Below, one piece after another: positions 1 through 21,089 of a stretch of 64,000 bases of DNA. The translations under genes were made by a program, and so were the position numbers. Below the pieces are notes generated by a model that did not search any database, was not told the origin of the DNA, and saw only the letters and a list, made by a program, of their open reading frames with translations. The stretch comes from Piromyces finnis finn (lineage: Eukaryota; Fungi; Neocallimastigomycota), in the NCBI GenBank assembly GCA_002104945.1, contig MCFH01000029.1, forward strand, positions 62,001 to 126,000. Reading direction: 5' to 3'. Every line of letters starts with the position of its first letter. Position 1 is the first letter of the stretch.

Positions 1-1023
1 CAAAATAAAAATATAGGAATTGAAATGAAAAGGAAACATACAATACTTGTTATGTCTAACATCTACTTTAAATAATTTGATTATAATAATTTATCATACA
101 ATACATATAAATTGAAAATAAAATTAAAATATTATCCATACCTTACATTACATACATATACATATTTATACATTGAATACATTATAATTCTTTGTTATTT
201 TTGTTATTTTTTCATTAAAGCTATAGGATTAGATTATATTAAAAAGGTTAGAGTATTTAAAAAAAAAACTTTTTTTTTTTGTTATTATTTTTGAACAAGA
301 AACAGAAATTGTTTGTTTGTTGTTGTTATTATTAAATGTTATATCATTATCAATATTGTATTTATTATATTTATTTATAATAATTATTAAACCATTTTAT
401 TATTTTTTTAGTATTACCAATATTAAAATTTTATTTTTAAAAAAAGTTTATTGAAAGGCATGTAATTACAACGAAATAGCATAAATATATTCATATAATA
501 TTAAAATTATTAAGATAATAATTTTAAGTAAAAATACATCAAGACTATCAAATAAATAAAAGAGATAATTGTAAATGAGTCCAAAGTAAGGTTATATACT
601 CAATTATAAATTTCATTTTTTTCTTTTTTTTTGTGATAAATATTACGAAAATAATAATATCAGTAATATTAAAAATTAAAATATTAATTACTTTATATTT
701 AATTATTATATGAGTAATAATCATTTCATGTATCATAACTATTTATATCTTCACATTTATATGAAAAACAACATGAAATATTCTTTTTTATTTATTTATT
801 AATTTTCAATACGAGTATTTTTTAATAACATTAAAAATATTAAAAAGTAACATTCTCTTAAAAATGTTATTTGACAACTATATGATTTGATATTTATTAT
901 CTATTTCTTATATAACTTTTGAAATTAGATTATTTAATAATAATAAAAGAAAAAATTATAATATTATTATCGTTTACAAAGTATTTTATTTTATAATTCA
1001 ATGTGTGTTGGTTTGATAAGTAT

Positions 1024-1041
1024 AACTAACCAACAACTAAA

Positions 1042-1108
<67 letters not shown>

Positions 1109-1117
1109 CTAACTAAC

Positions 1118-1164
<47 letters not shown>

Positions 1165-1293
1165 CTAACTAACTAACTAACTAATTAACTAACTAACTAA
1201 CTAACTAACTAAATAACTAAATAAATAAATAAATAAATAACTAACTAACTAACTAAATAAATAAATAAATAAATAACTAACTAACTAACTAAT

Positions 1294-1358
<65 letters not shown>

Positions 1359-1401
1359 AACTAACTAACTAACTAATTAACTAACTAACTAACTAACTAA
1401 C

Positions 1402-1476
<75 letters not shown>

Positions 1477-1505
1477 ATAAATAACTAAATAAATAAATAA
1501 ATAAA
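1024..1505. repeat. Compound tetranucleotide satellite (TAAC)n/(TAAA)n with TAAT interruptions
   Basis: About 480 bp of alternating TAAC and TAAA blocks, read directly. The sub-unit (TAAC)4-5 TAAT (TAAC)6-7 recurs about three times. Confidence 0.95.
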
Positions 1506-2179
1506 TATAATTTAAAATTAATTTTTTTTATTAGGAAAAATTTCACATTTAAAAAAAGCTATGTTACACAGAAACAAATTATAATATAATTTTTTTTAAA
1601 AATAATATAAATGAAATGAAAATTAGTTTCAAAGAAATCAAAAGTTGTAATTTAAAAAGGTAATTATAATATTTTATTTTGAAATGAAAAGATTAATTAG
1701 TATATATATTTAAGGAGTTATATATAAAATATTTAGACTTTATATGTTTGTTTCTTTTTTTATATTTACAATTCCATTTAAATTTTAAATTAATATACAA
1801 TTTTTAGAAAAAAGTTTGAATTATTAATTTGAAATTTCAAATTATAATGAATATATTTTTATTACATTATATATAATTATTTTTATTTTATTTTTGTATT
1901 GCTATTTTTATCCACTTTTTATTTCAACTAATATATTAGTGTTAGGTTTAAAATAGAATATATATTGTATATTTCATCTTTAATTTTAAGATTTTTTATT
2001 TTTTTTTTTAAATATTACATTTCTAAATCAAATTACAATTTAAAAAAGTCAAGATCAAAACTTTGTAAAATTTAAAAATTAACAATATTAAATAACATAT
2101 ACCATATATATTTAACATATCTATTATTATTTATAAAATTTATTTTTTTTTTATTTCTTATTCCTAAATTTATAATTTC

Positions 2180-4410
<2,231 letters not shown>

Positions 4411-4971
4411 AAAGACGAAGATAAATATAATAACAAAGAGTTTGTACCATTACATTTTGATGAAACAATAAAATTAGTCTTATTAGTTCAACAATTTAAT
4501 CCATTTTTTTTTTTAAACAGTATGGATTTGAAAAAAAAAAACATAAATATTATATATATAAATATAAAGCAGGTGCAACAACAATCAACAGAAAAATATA
4601 ACAAACATACAATAGAAATAATATTACCCTGACGATACTTCATTCTTATTTATTTTATAAATTTTATATTTTAAATATTTATTTATATCCATGGAAAATT
4701 ATAAAGTGTTATTATTTTTTTTTTTTAAAAAAGAGAAAAATTTCTCGTTTTAATTCTTTTATACAAAAATTAATATTTATCATTATAACTATGTAACTTT
4801 TAATTGTTTTATAGATTTTTATAAAATAGAACTAAGCAAATTTTTTTAAATATTCATATACCAAAAATCAAAATAAAACAATAAAGACATTTTCATTATT
4901 ATTTAAATATAAAATTTAAAATAAGTAAAAAACTTTTATTTACTGATTATATTCCAGAAGTTAATCATTGG

Positions 4972-5004
<33 letters not shown>

Positions 5005-5061
5005 ATATATTTATGTATAAAATGTACAATACTTTTTTTTTATGTTTTAAAACAAATGAAA

Positions 5062-5092
<31 letters not shown>

Positions 5093-5410
5093 AAATAAAA
5101 AGTATAAGTTTTATGATCTTTGTTTATATTTTATTTTGTATAATACTTAAAATCAATAACAATATTAATAATAAAAAGGTAAAAAAAAAAAAAAAAATGT
5201 TTTAGCGCTATATTAATTTTTTTTTTTTATAATTAGAAAATATTATATACAATATAAGCTTATAAATACCAGATTTATTTTAATATAAAATAATAAAAGA
5301 AAATAAAGGATTCTTAAAAAAAAAAAAAACTTTTTTTTTTTTTAAAAATCATTTGTATTTTTTCAATGTTTAATATAATATTAGAAATAAATCCATAATA
5401 ATGTATAATA

Positions 5411-5447
<37 letters not shown>

Positions 5448-5455
<8 letters not shown>

Positions 5456-5986
5456 ACCACGAGTGATTTAATACTTGGTCGATTGTTGGCCTTTTACTAC
5501 TATCTCTATTAGTCATCCAAATAATTAATTCTTTGCATTCTATATATAAATTATTTAATTTATGATAAGAAAGAAAAATAAAGAATTTATTATAATACTT
5601 AATTATTTAAATATTAAAAAAAAAAGTATATATATATAATAAATAATAGTATAATTTTTATAAAATTTCTAATTAATATTTTATTTTATTTTTTTATTAC
5701 CGTTAGAGATTGACTGTGGGAATGTCATTTTTTTTCTAATAATTTCATAATAGTCATTGAACGGGATAGCTTTGTAAATCATAGTATATAAAAGAATACC
5801 TAATGACCATATGTCTTGTGGAGGACCTTCATAAGTCATACCTTTGACAACTAATAATTTTATAATAATATTAAAAAAAAAAATTACTATATTTTTTATT
5901 CCTTATATAGTATATTGAATTAATAGTATAGAATGCTCATATATATATACTTTCTGGAGCCTAAAATAAATATATTACATATAATA

Positions 5987-6025
<39 letters not shown>

Positions 6026-7280
6026 CAAATTTAAATTTAAATCATTATTTATAAAGTAAAAATTTAAATTAAAAAAGTTTTTTTATTAACAAACTTACAG
6101 CAAATAAAAAACTTCCCACAAAATTACTTAATTTTTGATCTTTTTTATAAAAAGTACTTGAACCAAAATCAATTAATTGAATTTCTTTAGTTTGATAATT
6201 AATGAGAACATTTTCATCCTTTTTTTTTTAAGTTATAAAAGTTAAAAAAAAAAAATAATATTTTATAGTGTTAGAATTGATATTAAATTAATATATAATA
6301 TTAATCTATAAAGTATTAATATGGTATATTCTTATTAATATTTAGTCTATCTAACTCTCATTACTTTTATATCACGATGAACAATATGATTATGATGTAA
6401 AGTTTGGATAGCTTCTACTATATTTTTAAAAATTATTTTAGCTTCTTTTTCCGACATCATTTTATCCGTAGTTTTATCGATATAATCAAAAAGATCAGAA
6501 TTAAAATCTTCTGTGTCAGCAAATACTAAATAATAGTAAATAGAATCTTCCCAGTAAGCGATAAGCTTTGTTAAATTATTTGGAACATCTCCGTTAAATT
6601 TATCATAAAGATTTTGTAATACAGCTATTTCATTTGGAAATTTTTTGTAGGCATTATCATTACTGTAGGTCCAACATCCTCTTAATATTAATGATTTTAC
6701 AACATACTTTATAATCACTTTTTTTTGGGTTTGATTATGAATAGCATTTCTAACAAATCCACTGGAACCTTTTCCTAATTGTTTAGTAATTGTAAAATCG
6801 TTGATATCTTTTGATGTTCGAAGATTTTCGTAAATTCCCTTTTCTTTATAAAAATCACTATTTTTCATTTCCTTTTCAAATTCCTTAAAAGATATTGATC
6901 GACAATCTAAATTGGCACTTTTCAACATTAAAAGTAAATCTTTTTGATTTTTGTAGTTATGATCATTTTCGAAGAAGAGTAAAAGGATATTATCTTCTTT
7001 TTGTGAATCTAAATAATGCTTTGAATAGGATAAAATGTCGCTTGAGAAATGATTTACCCCAGAATGGGTAGTATAAGTAATACTAATAGAATTGGTAAAA
7101 TAGTTATCGTCTAATGATTTACTCTTGTCAAAGATTTTTTCGATTTCATGATTTTCACACTTAAATAAACTTTTATGATATATTTTTAATAAATTATAGG
7201 AGATAAACCACCATAATAAGAATATTTTCTTTTCCTTATCCGTATTACCATCTTTAATAAATAAAAGTTATACATATATT

Positions 7281-7317
<37 letters not shown>

Positions 7318-7901
7318 GTATTTTTAAATGTCAATTTTTTTTAATTAGTTTAAATAATTAATAATAACTTTAGTAATAACATATTAACATAATAATAATT
7401 AAAATACAATAAAAAAAAGTAATATATATATATATATATGTATATATTTACCTTTTTCAATATTTAATAATTCAAGGCAAAGGCATTGATGTAAATTAAG
7501 TGTATCCAATATAATATCATATTCATATTCGTATTTACCGTTTAAACGTTCAATACATTTGGTATATTTAGACAAGGCATTTAAATCGGCTGGAGATAAA
7601 CAAATAATACTATGATTTTTTTTGGTTTCGGTTTCAAAATTCTGAATCGTTTCTGAATCAAATTCTTTCAAGTATCTATAACGAATTTTGTAGCAGAGGT
7701 AGAAGGTCCAATTCCAAAAATGTTCAGACATTTTATTTTTTAGATTTTCTTGATTTTTACAATTATTTGGTTGATCTTTTACGATTTTTATGATATATAT
7801 TTTTGTATTTTAGGATATGAAATGTTATTATAAAAATACAAAAAATGTGTTACAGATATAGTATACATAAATAAATTAAAAAATAAATTGGTATTAAAGA
7901 G

Positions 7902-7951
<50 letters not shown>

Positions 7952-8542
7952 TACCTTTTAGATAATTTAACATGAGTTGATCTGAAAATGCAAGACAATT
8001 TAAAAATTTTTTTATTATATACATATTTTCACTATATATAAACATTAAATATTAATATTTAATAATAGTAAAAAAAAAAAAAATATTATAAAATATATGA
8101 AATTATTTTTTATTTTTACTCGTTTTCTTTATCATATGGATCAGATTTATTCATACATCTAATATGAAATAATTAATAATTAATAGTCAATATTTTTTTT
8201 TTAAAAATAAAATTATAAAAATTAAAATAAAAAAAAAAAAGAAATAATCATCATACTCATTCACTTCATCTACTGTAAGCACTTGTAATGGGATTTTGCT
8301 AATAAATGTTATCCATGATGGAAGAATAACTAATGAAATAAATAAAACAAATAAAACAAAAGCAAGAAAACAAACAAACAAATGAAAAAAAGATTATTAT
8401 TATTATATTATTATCTTGTATTTTCTATTTAATCATTATTTAAACTAAATTATGAAATTTATTATTTCTATTATATATAATTAGATTTATTATTTTAGCT
8501 ATTACCATTATTATTGTTTGCTGGGTTTAGTTGAACAACCAT
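5448..8542 (-). CDS. Ser/Thr protein kinase, PASK/PIM-like (CAMK group), with an unrecognised N-terminal region; about 10 exons
   Basis: Frame-consistent exon chain from ATG 8542 (MVVQLNPANNNN|VILPSW...). Catalytic motifs: LGKGSSGFV, VIIK, HRDIK|DENV, IDFGS, FA|APE|IVKG, DIWSLGILLY, RPTIDQVLNHSWLN* (stop 5448-5450). HRDIKDEN is typical of PIM/PASK kinases. Confidence 0.85.
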
Positions 8543-10930
8543 TTTTTTTTTCGTAATAATTAACTCTATTATTAGACTCTTCCTTTTTTATTATTATTAA
8601 TATATTACTATTTGATTTTAAATATTTTAATTCAATATATTTCTTATATGTATTTTTTTTTTTCTTTTGTATTTTATCAATGGCAAATTTGGTTAGATTT
8701 AATTTATTTTTTTTTTTAATTTCTTTTCTTTCCTTAATTAATATATGAACTTTTTAAAATTAAAAGAAAAGAGGAGAAAAAAAAGTGAATTGTTTAAGTG
8801 GGTTATATTTGGAAATATTTGATAAAGAGAAAAAAAAAAGAGGAATGGAATATATTAATTGAAATATATAATAAAAAGGTTTACTAGTTTTTTTTTCATA
8901 TAGTATATATATATATTATCTTTTTGATTTTTTTTTCTTATATAATATTATGAGTTACTAAGTTATTGATTGATAATGGAATGATGGTAATTTAAATGTA
9001 TGTATATGTGTGTATGATGATGATAATGGCAATTGATGAGGTGATAATGTGATTTTTCTTTTAAAAAATTATATTTTAAAAAGAAAAATGTATGGATAGG
9101 GAAAAAGGGAAATGTGATGGAATTTTTTAAAAGAAATATGATATGGTTTAACTTAGAACTAATAACTTTTTCTTTTCTTTTCTTTCCTTTTTTTTTTTTT
9201 TTTCTTTATACTTGTTTTTTCTTTTCTTTTTTCTTTTCTCTATTTCTTGAATTTAAATATTACAAAGTATTGTTCGCTTTCCCTTTTTTTTTTTAATTAT
9301 TATAATTTAAAATTAGAAAAGTAATATTGATTGATACTTAATATTGAATGATATTTTTAAAATAAAAGCTTGTAAAAAAAAAAAATGATATGATGATAAA
9401 AAATTAAAATATGGTTGAAAATTGTTGTACTATATTATTAAAAGAAAAAAAAGTTAAAGTTATGTTATATAATACAAAAATAAAAAAAAAAATAAAAATA
9501 AAAATAAATAAAAATAAGAATATAATGTATAATGGTATATTAAATAAAAATTAATTAATAATGTGTCAGGTATTAGGTATAATAAGTTTTAATATTATTA
9601 TTTTTTCTTTATATCAATGTTTTGTAATACGCTTATGAGCCTCTTCTGAAAATTATAATATATATATATATTAAATAGATAGGATGATATTTTATCTATA
9701 TATATATATATAAAAGTATTGAATGTATATAAAAAATTATTTAAAAATACCATATAATAAAATAAATAAATAATAATAATAATAATAAAAAAAAAAAAAA
9801 AAAAAAAAAAAAGAAAGGATTTATTAAAAATAATTATAAAGTAACATACCTATTATTATTATTTTCTTTACATTTAATTATGAAAAAGTAATGTTCAAAA
9901 TTAAATTCAATTATTTAATTCTTTTTTTTTTTTTTCTTCTTTTTTTCTTTTTTTTTTCTTCTTTTTTTCTTTTTTCTTTCTTTCTTTTTTTTTTTTTTTT
10001 AATTATTATTATTTTTATTTTTTTTTTATTTTCTAAATCAATGTGAACAATGATACTTTAGATAATTAATATTTATGTATTTTTTTGTAATAATTAAAAA
10101 AGCTGGTTTAATTATTTATACCAAGATACCAAAAAATATTACTTATAGAAAGTATTATTTATTTTTTTTAAATTGCAGTATTTTTTTTTTTTGAAATTTA
10201 GTTGCTTCAAATGAACCTTTTATTTTTTTTTTAAAGAGGTTATTATTTCTCTTTTATAATACAATTATTCCAAAAAGGTAATAAAAACAATGAATCGTTA
10301 AAATATAAATATTATATAATTTAACTTGGTTGCCTATTTATTATATAAAAAGCAAAGGATAAAAAAATCTAAACAAAAAAAAAAAGCAAATTTTTTTTTT
10401 TATTTTCTTCTTTTATTTTATCTTTCCTTTTTACAATAATATAATATAATTCTCTTGTTATATTAAAGGCAAAGGATACTATTTCATTGAAGATTGTTCG
10501 TCTGTTAATTTTATTTAATGATTCTTTTTATTTATTTATTTTTATTAGAACAAAGAAAATTTCTTTTTTATTTAAGTGTAAAGCCAAACTTTTAAAAAAA
10601 AATTAATTATACTGTTTCACTTTTTTTTAATCAATAATTTTTTTAAACTTTAATTAAATATTGAATTAATAAATTTTAATTAATAATAATTTTTTTTTCT
10701 TTATTTTTTTTGATAGAATATAAAAATTAAAAAAAAATTATTTGTTTTTTTTTTTTTACCAGAAAATTTAAAGTTTATTGAATGTATTGTAATATGTTAT
10801 AGACATATATTATTTAATTAAAATTTAAAATAAAATAAAGAAAAAATTACAGATTTTAAATTAAATTATTAATAAGGGAAAATCGAACAATGAAAATAAT
10901 AAATTGACATTTTCTATTATTAAATATAAA

Positions 10931-11090
<160 letters not shown>

Positions 11091-11997
11091 TTTAATATTA
11101 CTCTAATTAGTATAAAAAAAAAAAAAAGAGAAAGAAATTAATAAACAATTTATTATATTAAATTGTAGTTTATTAAAAAGTTAAAAAGTTAGAATAGGGC
11201 AAAATAAACCATTCTGTTTTTTTTATTAAAAATATTTACACTTTTCATAATTATATATTTAGTATTATTAAAAAAAAAGTTTTATCTATACTAAATAAAT
11301 AATAATATTTATTTATAACTTTTATATATATTTTTACTACTATTAATTATATTCTAGTACACTTAAATTGAAGTATTTGATATATTAAAAAAAATATTAA
11401 ATTTAAAAAAAAAAAAAAAATCCAAACTTTTTACAAGAAGTTTTAGGTTTGATAAAAAAGTAAAAAGAATTAATAATTGATCATTAAAAAGTCAATGATA
11501 TTTATATTTTAAATATTATTGTTATTATTTTTTAAAAAAGAATAATTTATAATTCATTTACTCATTTACTTATTTTATTTATACTTTATGTTTTGTTGAG
11601 TATAAATGAATATAGATTTATATCTTATATATTTTATCATAATTATTATTCTATTATTTCATTATTTTATTTCTAAAATAAAAAATACATTTTTTTTTTT
11701 TTTTTTTTTTTTTTTAGTATCCTTATTTAATGATTTTATACTTTTATATATATATATATATAGATATAATGAAAAAATAAAATAATATTATTTAACAAAA
11801 ACCATAAATTCTTTTTTCTTTTTTCTTTGAATAATGTATATTTTAATGAATTGTTAATGATAATAATGATGTTGCTGCTATTTTTGTTCTATTTTTATTT
11901 ATTTTTAAATACTAATTATTTTAGTTTTGATTTGTTTTAATTTTATTTTATTTTTTTTAAACTTTTGATATTATTTTGAGTTTGATTTCAAAAGTAA

Positions 11998-12205
11998 TTA
12001 ATTAATAATCTTAAAGTAAACATCATTTGGTTGATAACTTTTTGGAAGTTCAAATAAATCATCTGTTATTTTAGTCTCATCAGTATGAACATTTTTAAAT
12101 TTAACTTTTGCAAAAACAGTAGCCATTATTGGAATTTCTATGATATTAAAAAATATATATATATAAAATAATTTAATATACAAATAGATAATGCATAAAA
12201 ATTTA

Positions 12206-12251
<46 letters not shown>

Positions 12252-14758
12252 GTTTCAAAAATAATAATAATAATAATAAAAACATCTTTTTTTTTTAAAT
12301 TCAATTATTCCATTATTTTTTACCTATCTTTCCTGGGAAATGATCTTTTCCGGATAAACTATTTATAATTTGATCAACGTATTTTTTTGTATTTAATTCT
12401 TCTTCTGGATTTGTAGAGGTAAAAGATAATAAATATTCTAGTAAAGGAGCAAATTGTGAAAGACTTACTGGATAATCCTCATCACATTTACACATAAAGA
12501 ATTTAACTTTTTGTTTATATATATGTTGATCATATTCAACATTAATTTTTCTACCCATATGAAGAGGTCCTTTTGCTGCTCTAATATATTCCTGGAATGA
12601 CATATCTTGTTTTTCCCAATATTTATTTTGGGGTTCACTGACAACTTCACGAATACGCTCAATATTTGGATTAGAATTAACAAGACTACTAAGGGTACTA
12701 CTATTATTATTGTATTTTTCTGTTGATAATTTTGTATTACTATTATTATTACTGGCCATAATGGTACTATGACTTACAAATTTGCTTGTATTAAATGATT
12801 CAACGGATTTAGTTTCAATATTAGTAGTAGTATTACTCTTTAACGACATAACGGATGGAGTTGGTCCTAAGGTTTTTGGCGTTTCAAGAAGTAAACCATC
12901 AATATTTTCATTATCTATATCTTCTAAATATTGTTCAATATGTTTATTTAAAAATTCTATATCCTTCTTTTGTAATGGATTATCATTTTCATCTTTACCC
13001 GTAATTAACATATGTGTGATTTGTTCTTTCGTTTTATTATTTAGTGGACCCTTTCCATTATTTAACATTTCTATAATACTATTTTGATTATTATCTTTAT
13101 CTTTTTTGATATCTTCTTCAGAAAAAGATGATTCATATCCTTCTTCTTCCTCATCACTATCCATATTATCCGAATCATACATATCATCATTACTAGGGAG
13201 TTTTGACGAAGTAGAAGTATTTGTTTCACTTGTATTTTTTTGTATTTTTTTCTTATGAATAATTTTTGTTTTTACAAGTGAACTTGGTCTATCGCCAATT
13301 AATCTTTCATTTAATCTTTCCTGAGTATTTAATATAACATTGGTTAATTTATAAACATCTGCTTTAACAGATCTACTATTAAGTTGAACGGATTTTGATT
13401 TACTAAATAATCTTTTATTTTTCTTTTTAATTTGAATATCTTTTAAATTTAAATCAAATGAAATAATACTTGATGCATTACAATATTGAGAAACAAAATC
13501 GTATAATGACCATGAAGGAATATTTGGGAAAATTTCTTGGAAAGTCTTTTTTTCATGATCAAGAATATGAATAACAGGTAATTCTTAAAAGGTTAATTTT
13601 ATTTTTATAAAATAAATTTAATTTAGTTTATGTATTACGAAATATTTACACACAAATAAAAAAATAAAAAATAAAAATTTATAAAATCATAAAAATATGT
13701 GCCTAAATTAAAAAATAATAATAATAAAAAAAAAAAGACATAAATCTTTATAGATCAACAAACAACATGAAATAATGACAAACAAACAACAAAATGATTC
13801 TATTATATATATATAAGAATAGTACCTTCATTTGGTAGCATATTAATAATAATACTCATATTTCCTTTTAAGAACTTTGGAATGGATCTTCTGTCTAAAC
13901 CAATTGTATGGAAATCAATTCTAAATTTTGATTCCTTTTTATATATAGTTATTAAATCTCTTGGACATATTTTTGCTAATAATGGAACTAGTTTTTTTGG
14001 AGGGAGGAAAGTGAATAAAAACAAAAAAAAAAAAAAATTATCGATATTAATAAAAATTATCATACTAAATTTAAAAAAGAATATGGTATAATTTTTTTTA
14101 ATAATATACCTGGACTTCTAAATGACAAAGCGACTTGTGTTTGGAAACATGGAAGTGTCTATATAAAAAAAGAAATTTAAAATGAAATAATTATTTAATT
14201 TATTCTCATATCAACAAAACTATTAATGATTACAAATATTAATTGAAGAAAAGGAATGATGCTTATTTTCTAGGGAAAAAAAAAAATACCTTGTTAAATT
14301 GTTCTAATAAACCATCTGGTCCAAGACACTTTTTAACCGCATTTGTCCATTTTTGAATTATTAATTTTTCTATTAAATCAATATCACCAATTCTATATTT
14401 TAATTATAATTAGTTTAAATGATTAATTTTTTAATATTAAAAACTATATAAAAAACATTCTCATTCTTATTTTTAGTATTGCTATTAATTATGATAAAAC
14501 TAGTATAGAATATTACAATGACGCTTCATCCAAACAAGACCATCCAAAACCATTTTTAATAGAAGTATCTGCACCAGTATCGATTAATTTTTGAGCACAG
14601 TTTCTTCTATCAAGCATTAATGCTAATTGTAATGCCGTATTTCCATGTGTATCTTTCTTATTTATAATTTTTTGTATGTTTGGTTGTTGTAAAAAAAGAA
14701 AGAGATTGACATAGTCATCGTTATAAATATATTTGTGTAATGTGTAATCCTCAACCAT
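11998..14758 (-). CDS. ANKRD13-family ankyrin-repeat protein (ankyrin repeats plus GPCR-chaperone-like domain); multi-exon
   Basis: Exon 1 has ankyrin repeats (LHKYIYNDD...DTHGNTALQLALMLDRRNCAQKLIDTGADTSIKNGFGWSCLDEAS). Middle exons include VPLLAKICPRDLITIYKKESKFRIDF. C-terminus FPGKI|EIPIMATVFAKVKF...LFELPKSY is characteristic of ANKRD13. No UIMs seen, so ANKRD13C-like. Confidence 0.8.
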
Positions 14759-15816
14759 TTTATTGTTAATTTTTAAATTTAAAATATAGAAATATATATA
14801 TCTAAAAAAAAATAAAATAAAATAAATATAAATATAAATTATATTAATTCTTCTTATTATTATTATTTTCGTTGTTTTTTAACTATAAAGTTTTTAAAAT
14901 TTAATTTATAACAAAAAAAAAAAGAAAGAAAGAAATTTATCTCTCACAATCAAGATAAGTATAGACAACTATTAAATTCTCAAATAACATCATATCTTTC
15001 TAGTTGAATAATAATGTTAATTCTAAATATTGAAGAATTATTGAATAAAGTCTTAAAATATTTTATTTTTTTTTTTTATATATATATTTTCAATTATCAA
15101 ATAAACTATTATTGGGTATAAAATAGTGTGATATATATAATATATATAATGAATTTTTAAAAAATATAATAGTGTGATATTCAAATTCCAAAGTTTTTTT
15201 TTTTTTTAAAAAAAGTAATAACAATAAAATATAAAAAATAAATTATGATTGATTGTGTTCTTATTATTACATAATAAAAAAAATATCTAAGCCAAATTGA
15301 TATTGATAAACATTATTATTAACCTTTAACTTTTAAACTGTTTTACAAGAATATATAATAAATATTTAATAATATTTTATGTTAAATTTGTTTGTTTTTT
15401 TTTCCTCTTTTGTACAATTGATATACTTTTTTTAACAAAATTTTCTCATGTCAAAACACTAAAATGAAAACTCTAATTTTTATTAGTTGAAATTTACCTT
15501 TGTTTTTTTTTTAAATAAACATATATATATATATCAATATGTATGATAATAAAATATATTTTTATATATTTACCTTTTGTATTGATTTCTGCTTTTTTGT
15601 TATTTAATTTTTTTCTTGTATTGTACTTTTTTTTTTTTTCCTCTTTGTTTAATTTTGTTAATTTAAGAAAAAAAATATATTGTTTTTTACTAGTATATAA
15701 AAAAGTGTCGTGACTATAATACAATGATATCTAGAATGAAAAGATTTCTTTTTTTTTTTTCTTTTTATTTATTTTTTATATAAATAAAAATCGTATATAG
15801 ACAAAAATTGAATTTG

Positions 15817-15854
<38 letters not shown>

Positions 15855-18104
15855 TAAAATAATATACAAGTTAATTTTCAAAGGTTTATTGAATTATGGT
15901 TTTTGTAAAATAAAAAATAAAAAAAAAAAAAGCATTTCTTTTAGGTATTTTTTTTTTTTTTCGAAACAAAATTAATAATTAAAAAATTAATAATATAAAT
16001 TAATTTTAATAAACCATAATTAATATAATTTTAAATTATGAAAAAAGCTTGAAAACTCGATGCTCTTTATTTTTTATTATTCTTTATTTTGTTTTGTTTA
16101 TGGTATAATAATAATAAAAAAAACCATTTTAGAAACAATAGAGTAATAATATAAAATAAAAAATAAATGATTTTAATATTTATATTTATTAAACAATAAA
16201 TAAAGAAATCATCATTTTATTTTTTTTTAGTGAATTAGATTTGATACCTTTTTTTAAACCTAATAAATACTTAAATTAAAATAATATATTCTATATTAAT
16301 TCCTTTCATTTATTTTTGTGGAATGATGAAAAAATGGCCCATCACCACGATTCTTTTTTTTTTTTGATTTAATTACTATTCCTTTATTTTTATTATTAGT
16401 TTATTTAAAATCACCTATCCTTTATGATTATTCTTTATTTCAAGATTATAACTACACCTTAATCAGATTTTTATCAATATTTAATAATGATAATAGAAAA
16501 AAGAAAAAAAAAAAATCCTTTTTTTTTTTATGACTATAAATAATTCAACCAAAGTTTATGGTATAACTGAAGAGATCCTTTTGCTACTTTCATAGCTAAA
16601 ATTCATTATTGAAATTAGTTTTAATTAATAAAAACCAATCAAGAGATGTATTTTATTATAATATATATTGCATAATATATTGCAATATAATGATAATAGT
16701 TTATAGTATTTAATTTTTAATGTAATACAAAATGAAAATAAATTAAATTTCCTTTTTTTAACTTTAAATAGTAATAATTAAAAAATAAGTATCTTTATAA
16801 ATTAATTTTAAATCTAATCCGTAATACAAAAAGCAGAATAAAATATTAATGTAGTTTATTTTAACAAAATTATAATTATTAACAATAAATAATAAAATGC
16901 GTGCATTTTAATCTTTTTTTATAATAAAAAAAGAAATATAGATACAATGTTCTATTTTTTTTTTTGCATAAAAGAAGATAAAATATCATTTTTTTTATTT
17001 TTGTCAAATCTTTACAATAGATGATCATAAAATATTAGGTTACACAAAGTCAACAAATTTTTTGATATTAAAAGTCAATAAAAATGAAGTCTTAAAAATG
17101 AAAAAAGTATAAAAAGTAGCATTTAAAGTTTTTTTTATAAACCAAAAATAATAATAATAATAATAATAATATATGTATATATATATATAGAAAGAAAGAG
17201 AAATAAATAAAATTATTTTTGAATTTTACCCTTCTTCATTATACCTATTTTTATTAAATAAAAAAAAAAATTGTTACACCAAAAATAAATCTAAATAAGA
17301 TAAATTTTAACTTTTGAATCTACTTTATAAAAACTCTTAATCATCCTAAATTTCATTACTTTTCTTAAACGATATTTATATTAAACTATAAAAGAAGGGG
17401 TAGGAGAAATGGTGTAAATATCAGAGTTATTATTAATTTTCTTAAAATAAAAAAAACTTTCTCGTCATAATGAATTTTTATTTTTCTAGTGTTAAATTTT
17501 ATTTTTTTTTCTTTAAAAAAAAAAAAGTAAAATATTATTTGAATATTATATTAATATAAATGTATTTAATATCATAAATACTATAATACATTGCTATTGC
17601 GTTTCTTGTTAAATTAAAAAATATGAAAATAATAAGAGTTAAAAAAAAAAAAAAGTATATGTATATATTCTTTCTATTTATCTTTTTTTTTTTTGTCTTC
17701 TTTTCTCTCTCTTATTTTTCTAATTCTTTTTTTTTTTTTTCTATTATTTTAATAAAAATAAAATAATAAAGAGGTGTGTTTCTTAAAAAACAACTTATAA
17801 TAATATAATTAAATTATTGTAATAAATATATATAGATGACTTATATATTAAACTTTAGATAAAAAGAAAAAATAAGAGAATTAAATAAATGGATAAAAAA
17901 AATAAAATAAAATAAAAAGAATAAAATTAAACAAACGCTAATATTATCTTTACAAAAAAAGAAAAAATTAAAAAGATAATAAAAATAAAAAAATTAAAGA
18001 AAAGAAAATGAATATAATATAATACATATATATAACATTTATATCCCTTCTCTTTTTTTTTTCTTCCTTTAATTTTTAATGTATATCACGCATTATTATC
18101 CAAT

Positions 18105-19884
18105 TTACTTCTTTGATTTAGTGGTTTTGGTGGATTTCTTTGTAGCTGATGAGGAAGACTTCTTTTTAATAGTTTTCTTTGGAGCAGCAGCAGTTTTAGT
18201 GGTAGTCTTCTTAGTAGTGGCAGCAGCCTTTTTGGTTGGGGCAGCAGCCTTCTTAGTTGGGGCAGCTTTCTTAGTAGTGGTAGCAGCCTTTTTGGTGGTA
18301 GTAGCAGCAGCCTTCTTAGTAGTAGCAGTGGTAGGCTTCTTCTTTTCAGCAACCTTCTTGGCAACTGGTTTCTTAGCCTTTGGCTATTTAAAACATTTTT
18401 TATTTATAAAAGATTTAAAAAAAAAAAGGTATTTAGTAAAGCTTTGCTCTTACACCTTTTTTTAGCATTACATAATTGATAAACGCATTAATGATTATTA
18501 AATAGATTTGTTATTGATAATATCAAGTATATATATATATTATTGTATAATTTTTAATTTATATAATTTTGGTTTTAAATAATTAAATTTTTAATAATCA
18601 TAGGCAATTTTTATCCAATCAAAATTTAGAATTTATATGAATGGATGATTATTCTGTGTATTATTCCACTCATTATCATCAAAATAATAAAATGTTCAAA
18701 GAATTATTATTAAAAAGGTGTGTAATTACTTTTTCTTGCTTGAATAACTTGTATGAGTTAGAGTGACCTTGTGGGCAATATATAATCTTTTGTTCTAAAC
18801 CACGCTTTAAAGTTAAGTTGATTTGCTTAACTTTATTTTTTTAATTATATATCATAAAAAATAAATTTATTATATCAAATAAAAAAAAGGGGGAGGACAA
18901 TAAATATTTTTTAGTATTTTAAATTATTTGATTGTTCCTAATAAATTATTTAATTTCAAAACATACTAGCAACAGATTCAATAAGAGTGTACTTGGAAAG
19001 AATGTACTTCTTAATAGCTATTAATCATAATCATAATAAAATCAATTAGTATTTCCTTTACAATAAACTATTCTTTTTTTAAAAAAAAAAAAGTCGATTA
19101 AACATATTTAATAATTACCTTGTCTACTGGAACCAGTACGGTCCTTTTTTAAAAAAATTATTTCAAAAAATAAAATTAAAGATATATGTTATTTAGTTTT
19201 CATTTATTTATAAATTTTATTTTTATTCTATTGTGAACGTAAAATAAAAACCATCTTCTACCTTTAATTCAATAATAGCCTCTGTTATATAAATATAAAA
19301 TTTTTAAAAAATAGTATTAATATTATTAAGTTATTTTTATATCTTATATATTTTAATTATTATTGTTGTTGTTAAACTAGTTCAAAAGATTATAAAAAAT
19401 TTTTATTACCTCTATAATTATTTTAATTATTTTTTTATAAAAAAGTAATTAAATTGATTTAACAATTATAATAAATATTTTATGATTAATATAATGGTCA
19501 AATGATGTTCAATTAATAATAAAATCATTATTTCTGAATTAACAAAACGTTGAATATAGATAATAATGATATAAATGAATTATCTTTGATTTATATAAAA
19601 ACATTTTATACAGTATAAGATATTCAACATTAAAAATTAAAATTTGTACCTGATCATATCCCTATATTTTAAAATAAACATTAAAATAATTCATTAGTCC
19701 TATAGATTATTTTTTTATTACATAAATAAAACTATTTTTTATCTTTTTATTAAAGAGATATAATACTTCAACAAAAAGAGAAAAAAAACAATAATAATTA
19801 AAATTCCTACATGTATTTTGGATGGTCTGGTTGGCTTTTAGCATCCTTAGTAGCAGTCTTTGTAGTATTCTTAGCAGCAGCCAT
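18105..19884 (-). CDS. Linker histone H1; 8 exons including 12-, 2-, 20- and 25-nt microexons
   Basis: Exons 19884-19811, 19661-19650, 19411-19410, 19281-19262, 19143-19119, 19017-18967, 18830-18730 and 18383-18105, all GT-AG. They give [54 protein letters not shown]...KQINLTLKRGLEQKIIYCPQGHSNSYKL followed by a K/A/T-rich tail. This is a classic GH1 winged helix (HPxYxxMI..[15 protein letters not shown]). Confidence 0.93.
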
Positions 19885-21089
19885 TTTCTTTATTTATTTA
19901 TAGTAATAGTAAAATAAAAAAAATAAAAGGAAATAAAAAGAAGAGACCATTAATAAATATTTAATTTATTTTTGAATTATAAATTTGAAAAATTTTATAG
20001 TTTGTTTTTTTTAATTGAGTAATGTCAATGTTTAATTTTCTTTCCATTGCTTATTTTTTTATACATATCACATATATATAAATATATATAAATATATTAT
20101 GTTTTTATTCAAAAAGAAAAATAGCATTCCATGATACATACACTTTTTTTTTGATATTATATTTAAAAATATAGTTTAGTTGTTAGTAACAAAAAATAAA
20201 GTATCTTCTTCCTAAAAGATAATAAATATGATGGTCTTTACAAGTAGAGTTCAAAATATAAGATATATTTTGTGTGTAAAGTTTCGTTTTTCTTTTATAT
20301 ATCAAAAAGGTTTCTATTTTAAAGTGGTGTTAGAAACTTTTTTTTTTCAAGAGTTACTGTTCTCTTTTGATTAAAAAATTGATTCTTAAAAATTAAGAAA
20401 GAAAAGAAAGAAAAAAAAAAAAGGAAAAAAAGGTGTGGTGATATAAAAATTATTTGATATTAAAATTTCATTAATTATTATGATTCAATAATTTTTTTTT
20501 TTTAATAGTAAATACTAATAAAATTATAATAAAATTATTATATTAGAACGATATAATAAATAAATAAATAAATAAATAAATAGATTTCATAGTTAAATAA
20601 ATACATCCATAATTTAATATATGAGGAATTATATTGAAGTCATAGAAAAAAGATTATATTTTATTAAAATAAATAAATAAATAAATAGATTATATATCAT
20701 TCTATATAATTTTTAATGTAAAAAAGTATAAAACATATTTTAATTAAATTTTTAATTAATTTATATATTATAAAATGATATATAAAATAGTAATGAAATT
20801 GAATAGAAGTAATATTTCATACATATATTATAAATAGTATTTTATATATATAATTTTTAGATGTGTAATTTTGTTAATTGAAAAGAGGCATATATTACAT
20901 TATATTAGAAATATTAAATTTTATATATTATTATTTAAATGCAAAGGGTTAAGGTTTGATAAATCTAAAAAAATAACCCTTGAAAGAGAGGGGGAGTTAT
21001 ATCCTATAGATAAACCCAGCCAGTCTTTTTTTAAAAAAAAAAGTCTTTACTCATTTGTAAAAGAGAATAGCAAAAAAAAAAAAAAAAAA

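Follow-up and report, generated by a model that had tools for sequence, protein, structure and literature searches.

A probable two-nucleotide coding exon in the histone H1 gene of Piromyces finnis, at a splice-site motif kept in three genera of Neocallimastigomycota

The histone H1 gene and its transcripts

The minus strand of the 64-kb window, by which we mean the whole stretch of Piromyces finnis DNA analyzed here (identical to scaffold MCFH01000029.1, locus L012) and whose numbering is used throughout, carries a histone H1 gene (18105-19884) that runs from an ATG at 19884 to a TAA at 18107-18105. The region is ~15% GC and the gene is intron-rich, with eight exons and seven introns, and is covered by RNA contigs. 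A preliminary description of the locus had proposed that one of these exons, AG, is two nucleotides long; when the minus strand was recut, its exon coordinates, the position of the AG and the sizes of the flanking introns (238 and 128 nt) were all verified, and the exons, joined and translated with the AG included, give a stop-free open reading frame of 564 nt, i.e. 187 amino acids plus the stop. All seven introns of this model are of the GT..AG type.

Exon 1 (19811-19884, 74 nt) encodes M...HPKY followed by the bases AT, with a donor reading CAT-gtagga, and pieces of the RNA contigs span 19810-19887. Intron 1 (19662-19810, 149 nt, GT..AG) is absent from the RNA contigs, in which exon 2 (19650-19661, 12 nt, GGATATGATCAG) stands directly behind exon 1; exon 2 is present once in the window and is identical in three genera. 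It is followed by intron 2 (19412-19649, 238 nt, gtacaaat...ttatag), the orthologues of which measure 234 nt in Anaeromyces and 249-250 nt in Neocallimastix, by the candidate microexon AG (19410-19411), whose bases are the third base of an Arg codon (AGA) and the first of a Glu codon (GAG), and by intron 3 (19282-19409, 128 nt, gtaataaa...ataacag), with orthologous introns of 112 and 166 nt. Exon 4 (19262-19281, 20 nt, AGGCTATTATTGAATTAAAG), where the RNA contigs align to 19262-19283, is separated by intron 4 (19144-19261, 118 nt, GT..AG; RNA joint from 19142/3 to 19261/2) from exon 5 (19119-19143, 25 nt), which encodes DRTGSSRQ and has RNA joints on both flanks. Intron 5 (19018-19118, 101 nt, GT..AG), exon 6 (18967-19017, 51 nt; RNA joints 19017 to 19119 and 18830 to 18967), intron 6 (18831-18966, 136 nt, GT..AG) and exon 7 (18730-18830, 101 nt), which encodes helix 3 and the wing of the globular domain and is likewise bordered by RNA joints, lead to intron 7 (18384-18729, 346 nt, GT..AG) and to exon 8 (18105-18383, 279 nt; RNA joint 18383 to 18730), which encodes the Lys/Ala/Thr-rich C-terminal tail and the TAA stop. 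The RNA contig of run X1 continues for 339 letters past 18050, which would correspond to a 3' UTR of at least ~390 nt provided that the extension is colinear with the genome.

The translation has the tripartite layout of an H1, with a short N-terminal tail, a globular winged-helix domain and a Lys/Ala-rich tail that contains KKAA/KKPV repeats and is encoded by exon 8. Membership of the linker histone H1/H5 family is supported by a score of 60.4 bits for the public model of the gene against Pfam PF00538 (Linker_histone; curated cut-off 22.4 bits); exon 7 alone scores 16.4 bits, under that cut-off. Transcript-derived orthologous proteins that contain MDMIRE match the same profile with 82 bits over positions 1-73, whereas public models without MDMIRE reach 60 bits over positions 9-73, and the MI-x-x-A spacing is kept in more distant H1 proteins. 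An Rfam scan of 17500-20200 returned no family, and thus no histone 3' stem-loop behind the gene.

A search of sequencing runs identified four that carry ~21% of the sampled words, a share as expected for exons without introns, and three runs, from two studies, each yielded one contig over 18050-20000 at a depth of 160-250. The contigs skip 18384-18729, 18831-18966, 19018-19118 and 19144-19261, each of which is CT..AC on the plus strand and hence GT..AG on the strand of the gene. Since five introns can be missing at exact GT-AG borders only in cDNA, the runs are RNA. They confirm introns 4-7 and the exons of 20, 25, 51 and 101 nt, the first two of which, exons 4 and 5, have the sizes given in the preliminary description. 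Upstream of exon 4 the contigs pass from 19283 to 19810 through eleven intervening letters, CTGATCATATC, so that exon 2 is represented by these eleven letters together with an ambiguous G at 19810. Read on the gene strand, all three contigs give CAT G GATATGATCAG AGAGGCTATT. The mRNA of P. finnis is thus ATG GAT ATG ATC AGA GAG GCT ATT, encoding M-D-M-I-R-E-A-I and containing ATCAGAGAGGCT; it reads ATC AGA GAG GCT where inclusion of the AG had been proposed to yield I-R-E-A. The two extra bases are placed by the aligner at the end of the intron, on 19283-19282; as these last intron bases are likewise AG, this placement is not distinguishable from a GT..AC join.

The genomic sequence leaves little room for other sources of the two bases. 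When exon 2 is joined to exon 4 without the AG, the frame runs ...MIRGYY and stops, as the preliminary description had stated for the direct join of the 12- and 20-nt exons. With the acceptor at 19283-19282 the reading is AGA GGC TAT TAT TGA, ending in a stop, and with the following AG, at 19281-19280, as acceptor it is AGG CTA TTA TTG AAT TAA, again a stop; joins at 19281 and 19279 thus both hit stops, and no canonical acceptor restores the frame. Contiguous ATGATCAGAG is absent from the window, and splicing must therefore add two bases. A duplicate 14-nt exon at another place in the window was considered and rejected, given this absence and the single occurrence of the 12-nt exon. Within the 368-nt interval between exons 2 and 4, tatag-AG-gtaata (AG at 19411-19410) is the sole AGNNGT. 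When that interval was shuffled 20,000 times by dinucleotide, an AGNNGT of any kind arose in 15% of trials, AGAGGT in 0.36% and AGAGGTAA in 0.06%; AGAGGTAA occurs three times in the window, counting both strands (128 kb).

Each of the 21 RNA contigs recovered from four taxa (three from P. finnis, six from Anaeromyces, ten from Neocallimastix and two from a fourth taxon) carries the included form. No skipped form was present among them, although assembled contigs hide rare isoforms and intermediates. A search of metagenome and metatranscriptome contigs for the intermediate composed of exon 2, the AG and a retained intron 3 (GGATATGATCAGAGGTAA) gave ten matches, all unrelated sequences of 31-50% GC attributable to chance, and a protein search for partly spliced reading frames (predicted lengths 37 and 41 aa) with the Neocallimastix genomic exon 1 reading frame returned the query alone.

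Two of the Neocallimastix RNA contigs (L036:1-107 and L039:1-92) have an unusual arrangement, in that exons 2-6 are spliced correctly, stop at the donor of exon 6 (GTTGCTA) and are followed by AGTTATTATAAATA, then by a 5' UTR and a complete H1 reading frame. In the genome, AGTTATTATAAATA lies behind ttttatag, ~510 nt upstream of the H1 start codon (about position 1992 of locus L013). The junction could be a back-splice (circular RNA), tandem read-through or a cycle introduced by the assembler.

Conservation of the site and its treatment in public annotation

Relatives were found by searching with the exons singly. The 33-residue exon 7 sequence gave three useful matches in a representative library, i.e. 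P0002 (183 aa, 100% identical), P0001 (a 50-aa genomic reading frame) and P0006 (72 aa), which derive from P. finnis itself, from JGI and ENA metagenome contigs and from Anaeromyces robustus contig MCFG01000471.1; a protein word search with the exon 8 tail returned nothing, being swamped by low-complexity candidates. Use of P0002 as a query added the Neocallimastix cluster P0009, represented in three assemblies, and the transcript-derived proteins P0010 and P0011 (the two scored above at 82 bits). The P0009 cluster includes P0128, a protein of 202 aa present on 29 spliced JGI contigs. The Neocallimastix loci comprise those of the three assemblies (L013-L015) and five metagenome contigs (L003, L004, L006, L007 and L010).

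In A. robustus (L001) the region reads ataaag-GGATATGATCAG-gtatataa, 234 nt, ttttatag-AG-gtaatgat, 112 nt, atacag-AGGCTATT; in Neocallimastix the same exon 2 is followed by 249-250 nt, taatag-AG-gtaaaata, 166 nt and ataacag-AGGCTATC. From the transcripts, exons of 12, 2, 20, 25, 51 and 101 nt could be located in all three genomes with AG and GT on their flanks, and TAG-AG-GTAA is invariant in Piromyces, Anaeromyces and Neocallimastix. The interval between exons 2 and 4 is otherwise 54-65% identical between genera in an optimized alignment of ~87% A+T sequence, which is near the random level, and MAFFT left the Neocallimastix TAGAGGTAA out of register with that of the other genera. With the introns otherwise scrambled, the nine bases TAG-AG-GTAA stand out as an island of conservation. 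The chance of AGAGGT arising in shuffles of the interval is 0.4-1.4% per genus; we count three independent lineages, the three Neocallimastix assemblies and the metagenome contigs being identical here and treated as one. The sequence comparison indicates that the microexon layout is older than the split of Piromyces, Anaeromyces and Neocallimastix.

The mRNAs of the relatives agree with these genomic layouts, all reading ATGGATATGATCAGAGAGGCTAT / ATCAGAGAGGCT (Anaeromyces L016-L021; Neocallimastix L034-L043 and the protein P0128; the fourth taxon L022 and L023). Two of the checks suggested at the outset, presence of ATCAGAGAGGCT in cDNA and retention of ag-AG-gt in related fungi, agree with the microexon, the former in P. 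finnis and its relatives and the latter in two further genera, where the surrounding intron sequence is not conserved. The locus combines extra bases in the mRNA, an AG-exon-GT arrangement for which there is no canonical alternative and conservation in orthologues, three of the properties expected of an ultra-short microexon.

Neocallimastix has a second AGNNGT, aaag-TC-gtaatt, located 76-77 nt past exon 2 (L013-L015), which would be in frame as I-S-Q-A; it is unused, the mRNA encoding I-R-E-A. Over the 450-nt interval from exon 2 to exon 4, the three Neocallimastix assemblies (GCA_016946835.1, GCA_050613775.1 and GCA_002104975.1) and the JGI/ENA contigs are identical save for a 1-nt difference in poly-T length, and, as this interval is mostly intronic, the strains behind these records must be very close. 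Two metagenome contigs are anomalous around exon 2: L002 (4060-4140) has no 12-nt exon and has a poly-T run of >80 nt at that place, and L006 (1-180) has the 12-nt exon twice, flanking a similar poly-T run. The likely cause is that the poly-T runs in the introns on either side of exon 2 were collapsed or expanded during assembly.

Public annotation has missed the microexon, as the preliminary description expected of annotation pipelines. The P. finnis model (ORX47813.1, P0002) joins exon 1 to 19283, which implies a 527-nt GT..AC 'intron', loses the 12-nt exon and reads HPKY-I-EAII. The Neocallimastix models (ORY64556.1, KAG4090223.1 and KAL6622166.1, P0009) make the same join and likewise lose MDMIR, and the A. 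robustus entry (ORX65269.1, P0006) is a 72-aa partial model that begins at an ATG within intron 2 and uses the donor behind the microexon. In all, the H1 entries deposited for five assemblies are wrong at this place, and in those of P. finnis and Neocallimastix the globular domain begins without MDMIR. Annotation of these intron-rich, extremely AT-rich genomes may overlook ultra-short exons systematically, in which case protein catalogues used for enzyme mining would suffer.

Interpretation of the two extra bases

We propose, with a probability of roughly 0.88, that the AG at 19411-19410 is a constitutive 2-nt exon of the P. finnis H1 gene flanked by spliceosomal introns of the ordinary GT-AG type, 238 and 128 nt long. 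Direct observation extends to the mRNA, to the sites and to their conservation; from these we infer that the splice sites at 19412 and 19409 are used, neither partly spliced RNA nor a lariat having been seen among the contigs. The AG would complete an Arg codon (AG+A) and open a Glu codon (G+AG), so restoring the frame and the start of the conserved linker-histone fold.

An AG after the branch point is taken by the spliceosome as the 3' site. With the acceptor tatAG and the donor GTaata 2 nt apart, the factors that recognize the acceptor of intron 2 and the U1 particle at the donor of intron 3 are unlikely to bind simultaneously, so that the two introns would be removed in turn. Either order of removal is predicted to regenerate a normal site, i.e. 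ATCAGAG-gtaata if intron 2 leaves first or tatag-AGAGGCT if intron 3 does. The two bases of the microexon may themselves act as the exonic AG favored at -2/-1 of the donor that follows; as they supply this AG, AG-GTAA would give U1 six consecutive pairs.

The best-placed competing account is a single non-canonical intron of 366 nt, with GT at 19649 and AC at 19285-19284, removed in one step, TAGAGGTAA then being an intronic element with another role or a coincidence. It yields exactly the mRNA seen, and we agree with the preliminary description that the mature mRNA is the same for a 2-nt exon and for a GT..AC intron. The join is also the one chosen by the read aligner and by the public gene models, AC precedes AGAGGCT in all three genera, and the two-step route has left no intermediate among the contigs searched. 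The shared AC is, however, unremarkable, given that A is the commonest base at -4 of the acceptors of this gene and that a C at -3 yields CAG, the best acceptor; moreover, the cut would fall right before an AG instead of after it. GT-AC is, to our knowledge, no recognized class of splice-site pair for either spliceosome. U12-type introns of the AT-AC class have the 5' splice site RTATCCTT and the branch site TCCTTAAC; the 5' ends here (GTACAAAT in one genus and GTATATAA in the other two) are not U12-like and TCCTTAAC is absent near the 3' end, and a U12-type intron was thus rejected. A single intron also fails to account for TAG-AG-GTAA, which stands unchanged at a corresponding position in three genera with otherwise scrambled introns. 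We consequently regard this account as very unlikely.

The preliminary description also raised the idea that the microexon is real and works as a switch, with regulated skipping producing the MIRGYY-stop frame, degradation of the mRNA and thereby tuning of H1 dosage. Skipping would indeed frameshift immediately, and a 2-nt exon is expected to be fragile. Yet strong and invariant splice sites flank the exon, H1 has a housekeeping role in chromatin and the included form alone is found in the 21 RNA contigs from four taxa and several studies, in which minor isoforms are invisible. Regulated skipping is thus improbable, and inclusion looks constitutive.

Very unlikely, too, is a more radical version of the single-intron account, in which 19649-19284 has been kept as one GT..AC intron in three genera with TAGAGGTAA acting as an internal signal instead of an exon; it would entail a splice-site pair new to any spliceosome. 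Finally, that the genome is wrong or polymorphic, the true DNA being ...acagAGAGGCT with one more AG (AGAGAGGCT at 19283-19277), a normal acceptor and no microexon, is compatible with the RNA contigs and a short AG repeat is easily miscounted, but it is scarcely credible given that acAGAGGCT with two AGs is shared by the P. finnis and A. robustus genomes, by the three Neocallimastix assemblies and by no fewer than five independent metagenome contigs, every one of which also has TAG-AG-GTAA.

Relation to known ultra-short exons and composite introns

The proposed 2-nt exon resembles several systems in which splice sites lie unusually close together. At the recursive splice sites of long animal introns, AG and GT abut, giving a zero-length exon in a very long intron. 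Those sites and the H1 site alike have juxtaposed 3' and 5' splice sites within a seemingly single intron and imply stepwise removal; recursive sites, however, leave no bases and lie in very long introns, whereas in H1 two bases are retained between AG and GT and the introns are of 128-238 nt, such that the H1 site is not a recursive splice site. The stwintrons of filamentous fungi are closely adjoining U2 introns that are spliced consecutively, the first removal creating or exposing a site of the second (PMC5639578, PMC6616335). They share with H1 two introns so close that removal must be consecutive, but the inner intron of a stwintron splits one of the outer intron's splice signals and nothing between them stays, whereas in H1 two coding bases stay. 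As the AG is retained in the mRNA and is coding, the H1 arrangement is not a stwintron.

Closer parallels are provided by ultra-short exons. A long-read re-annotation of Coprinopsis cinerea reported 2-nt exons in 50 genes (57 in all) and 13 exons of 1 nt, and found that omitting exons of ≤3 nt creates premature stops and breaks gene models (PMC12230235). The H1 microexon is likewise a fungal internal exon of ≤3 nt; C. cinerea, however, is a basidiomycete with a genome-wide long-read catalogue, whereas the present case concerns one gene in an early-diverging anaerobic fungus of 15% GC and adds cross-genus conservation (PMC12230235). The CYP621A genes of Fusarium have a 1-nt exon, identified as AG-N-GT in an over-long intron, for which orthologues with the same site and RNA reads provide support (PMC12940212). 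There, as in H1, an out-of-phase pair of exons in a conserved motif is rescued by an exon that annotators missed, and the evidence for both exons comes from mature mRNA and conservation rather than from splicing intermediates; the Fusarium exon is of 1 nt in an ascomycete P450 gene and that of H1 of 2 nt (PMC12940212).

Exons of 1-2 nt are thus already documented in fungi and plants, and the H1 microexon is no new kind of biology. Its main value lies in the correction of annotation and in providing a well-conserved example. In the literature searched we found no link between microexons and Neocallimastigomycota, including by a looser search with genus names, and H1 adds a checked case of a probable 2-nt coding exon in this group, kept since before three genera diverged. 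The locus also offers a natural substrate in which 3' and 5' splice sites lie 2 nt apart, with three diverged orthologues to compare. APC11 of Arabidopsis offers a further precedent, a constitutive 1-nt exon that was tested with reporter constructs in protoplasts (PMC4674806). Like the exon proposed for H1, it is constitutive and ultra-short, has canonical introns on each side and was mis-annotated in a database entry; it differs in belonging to a plant gene and in having been tested with reporter constructs, whereas the H1 exon is proposed from sequence, its conservation and RNA contigs.
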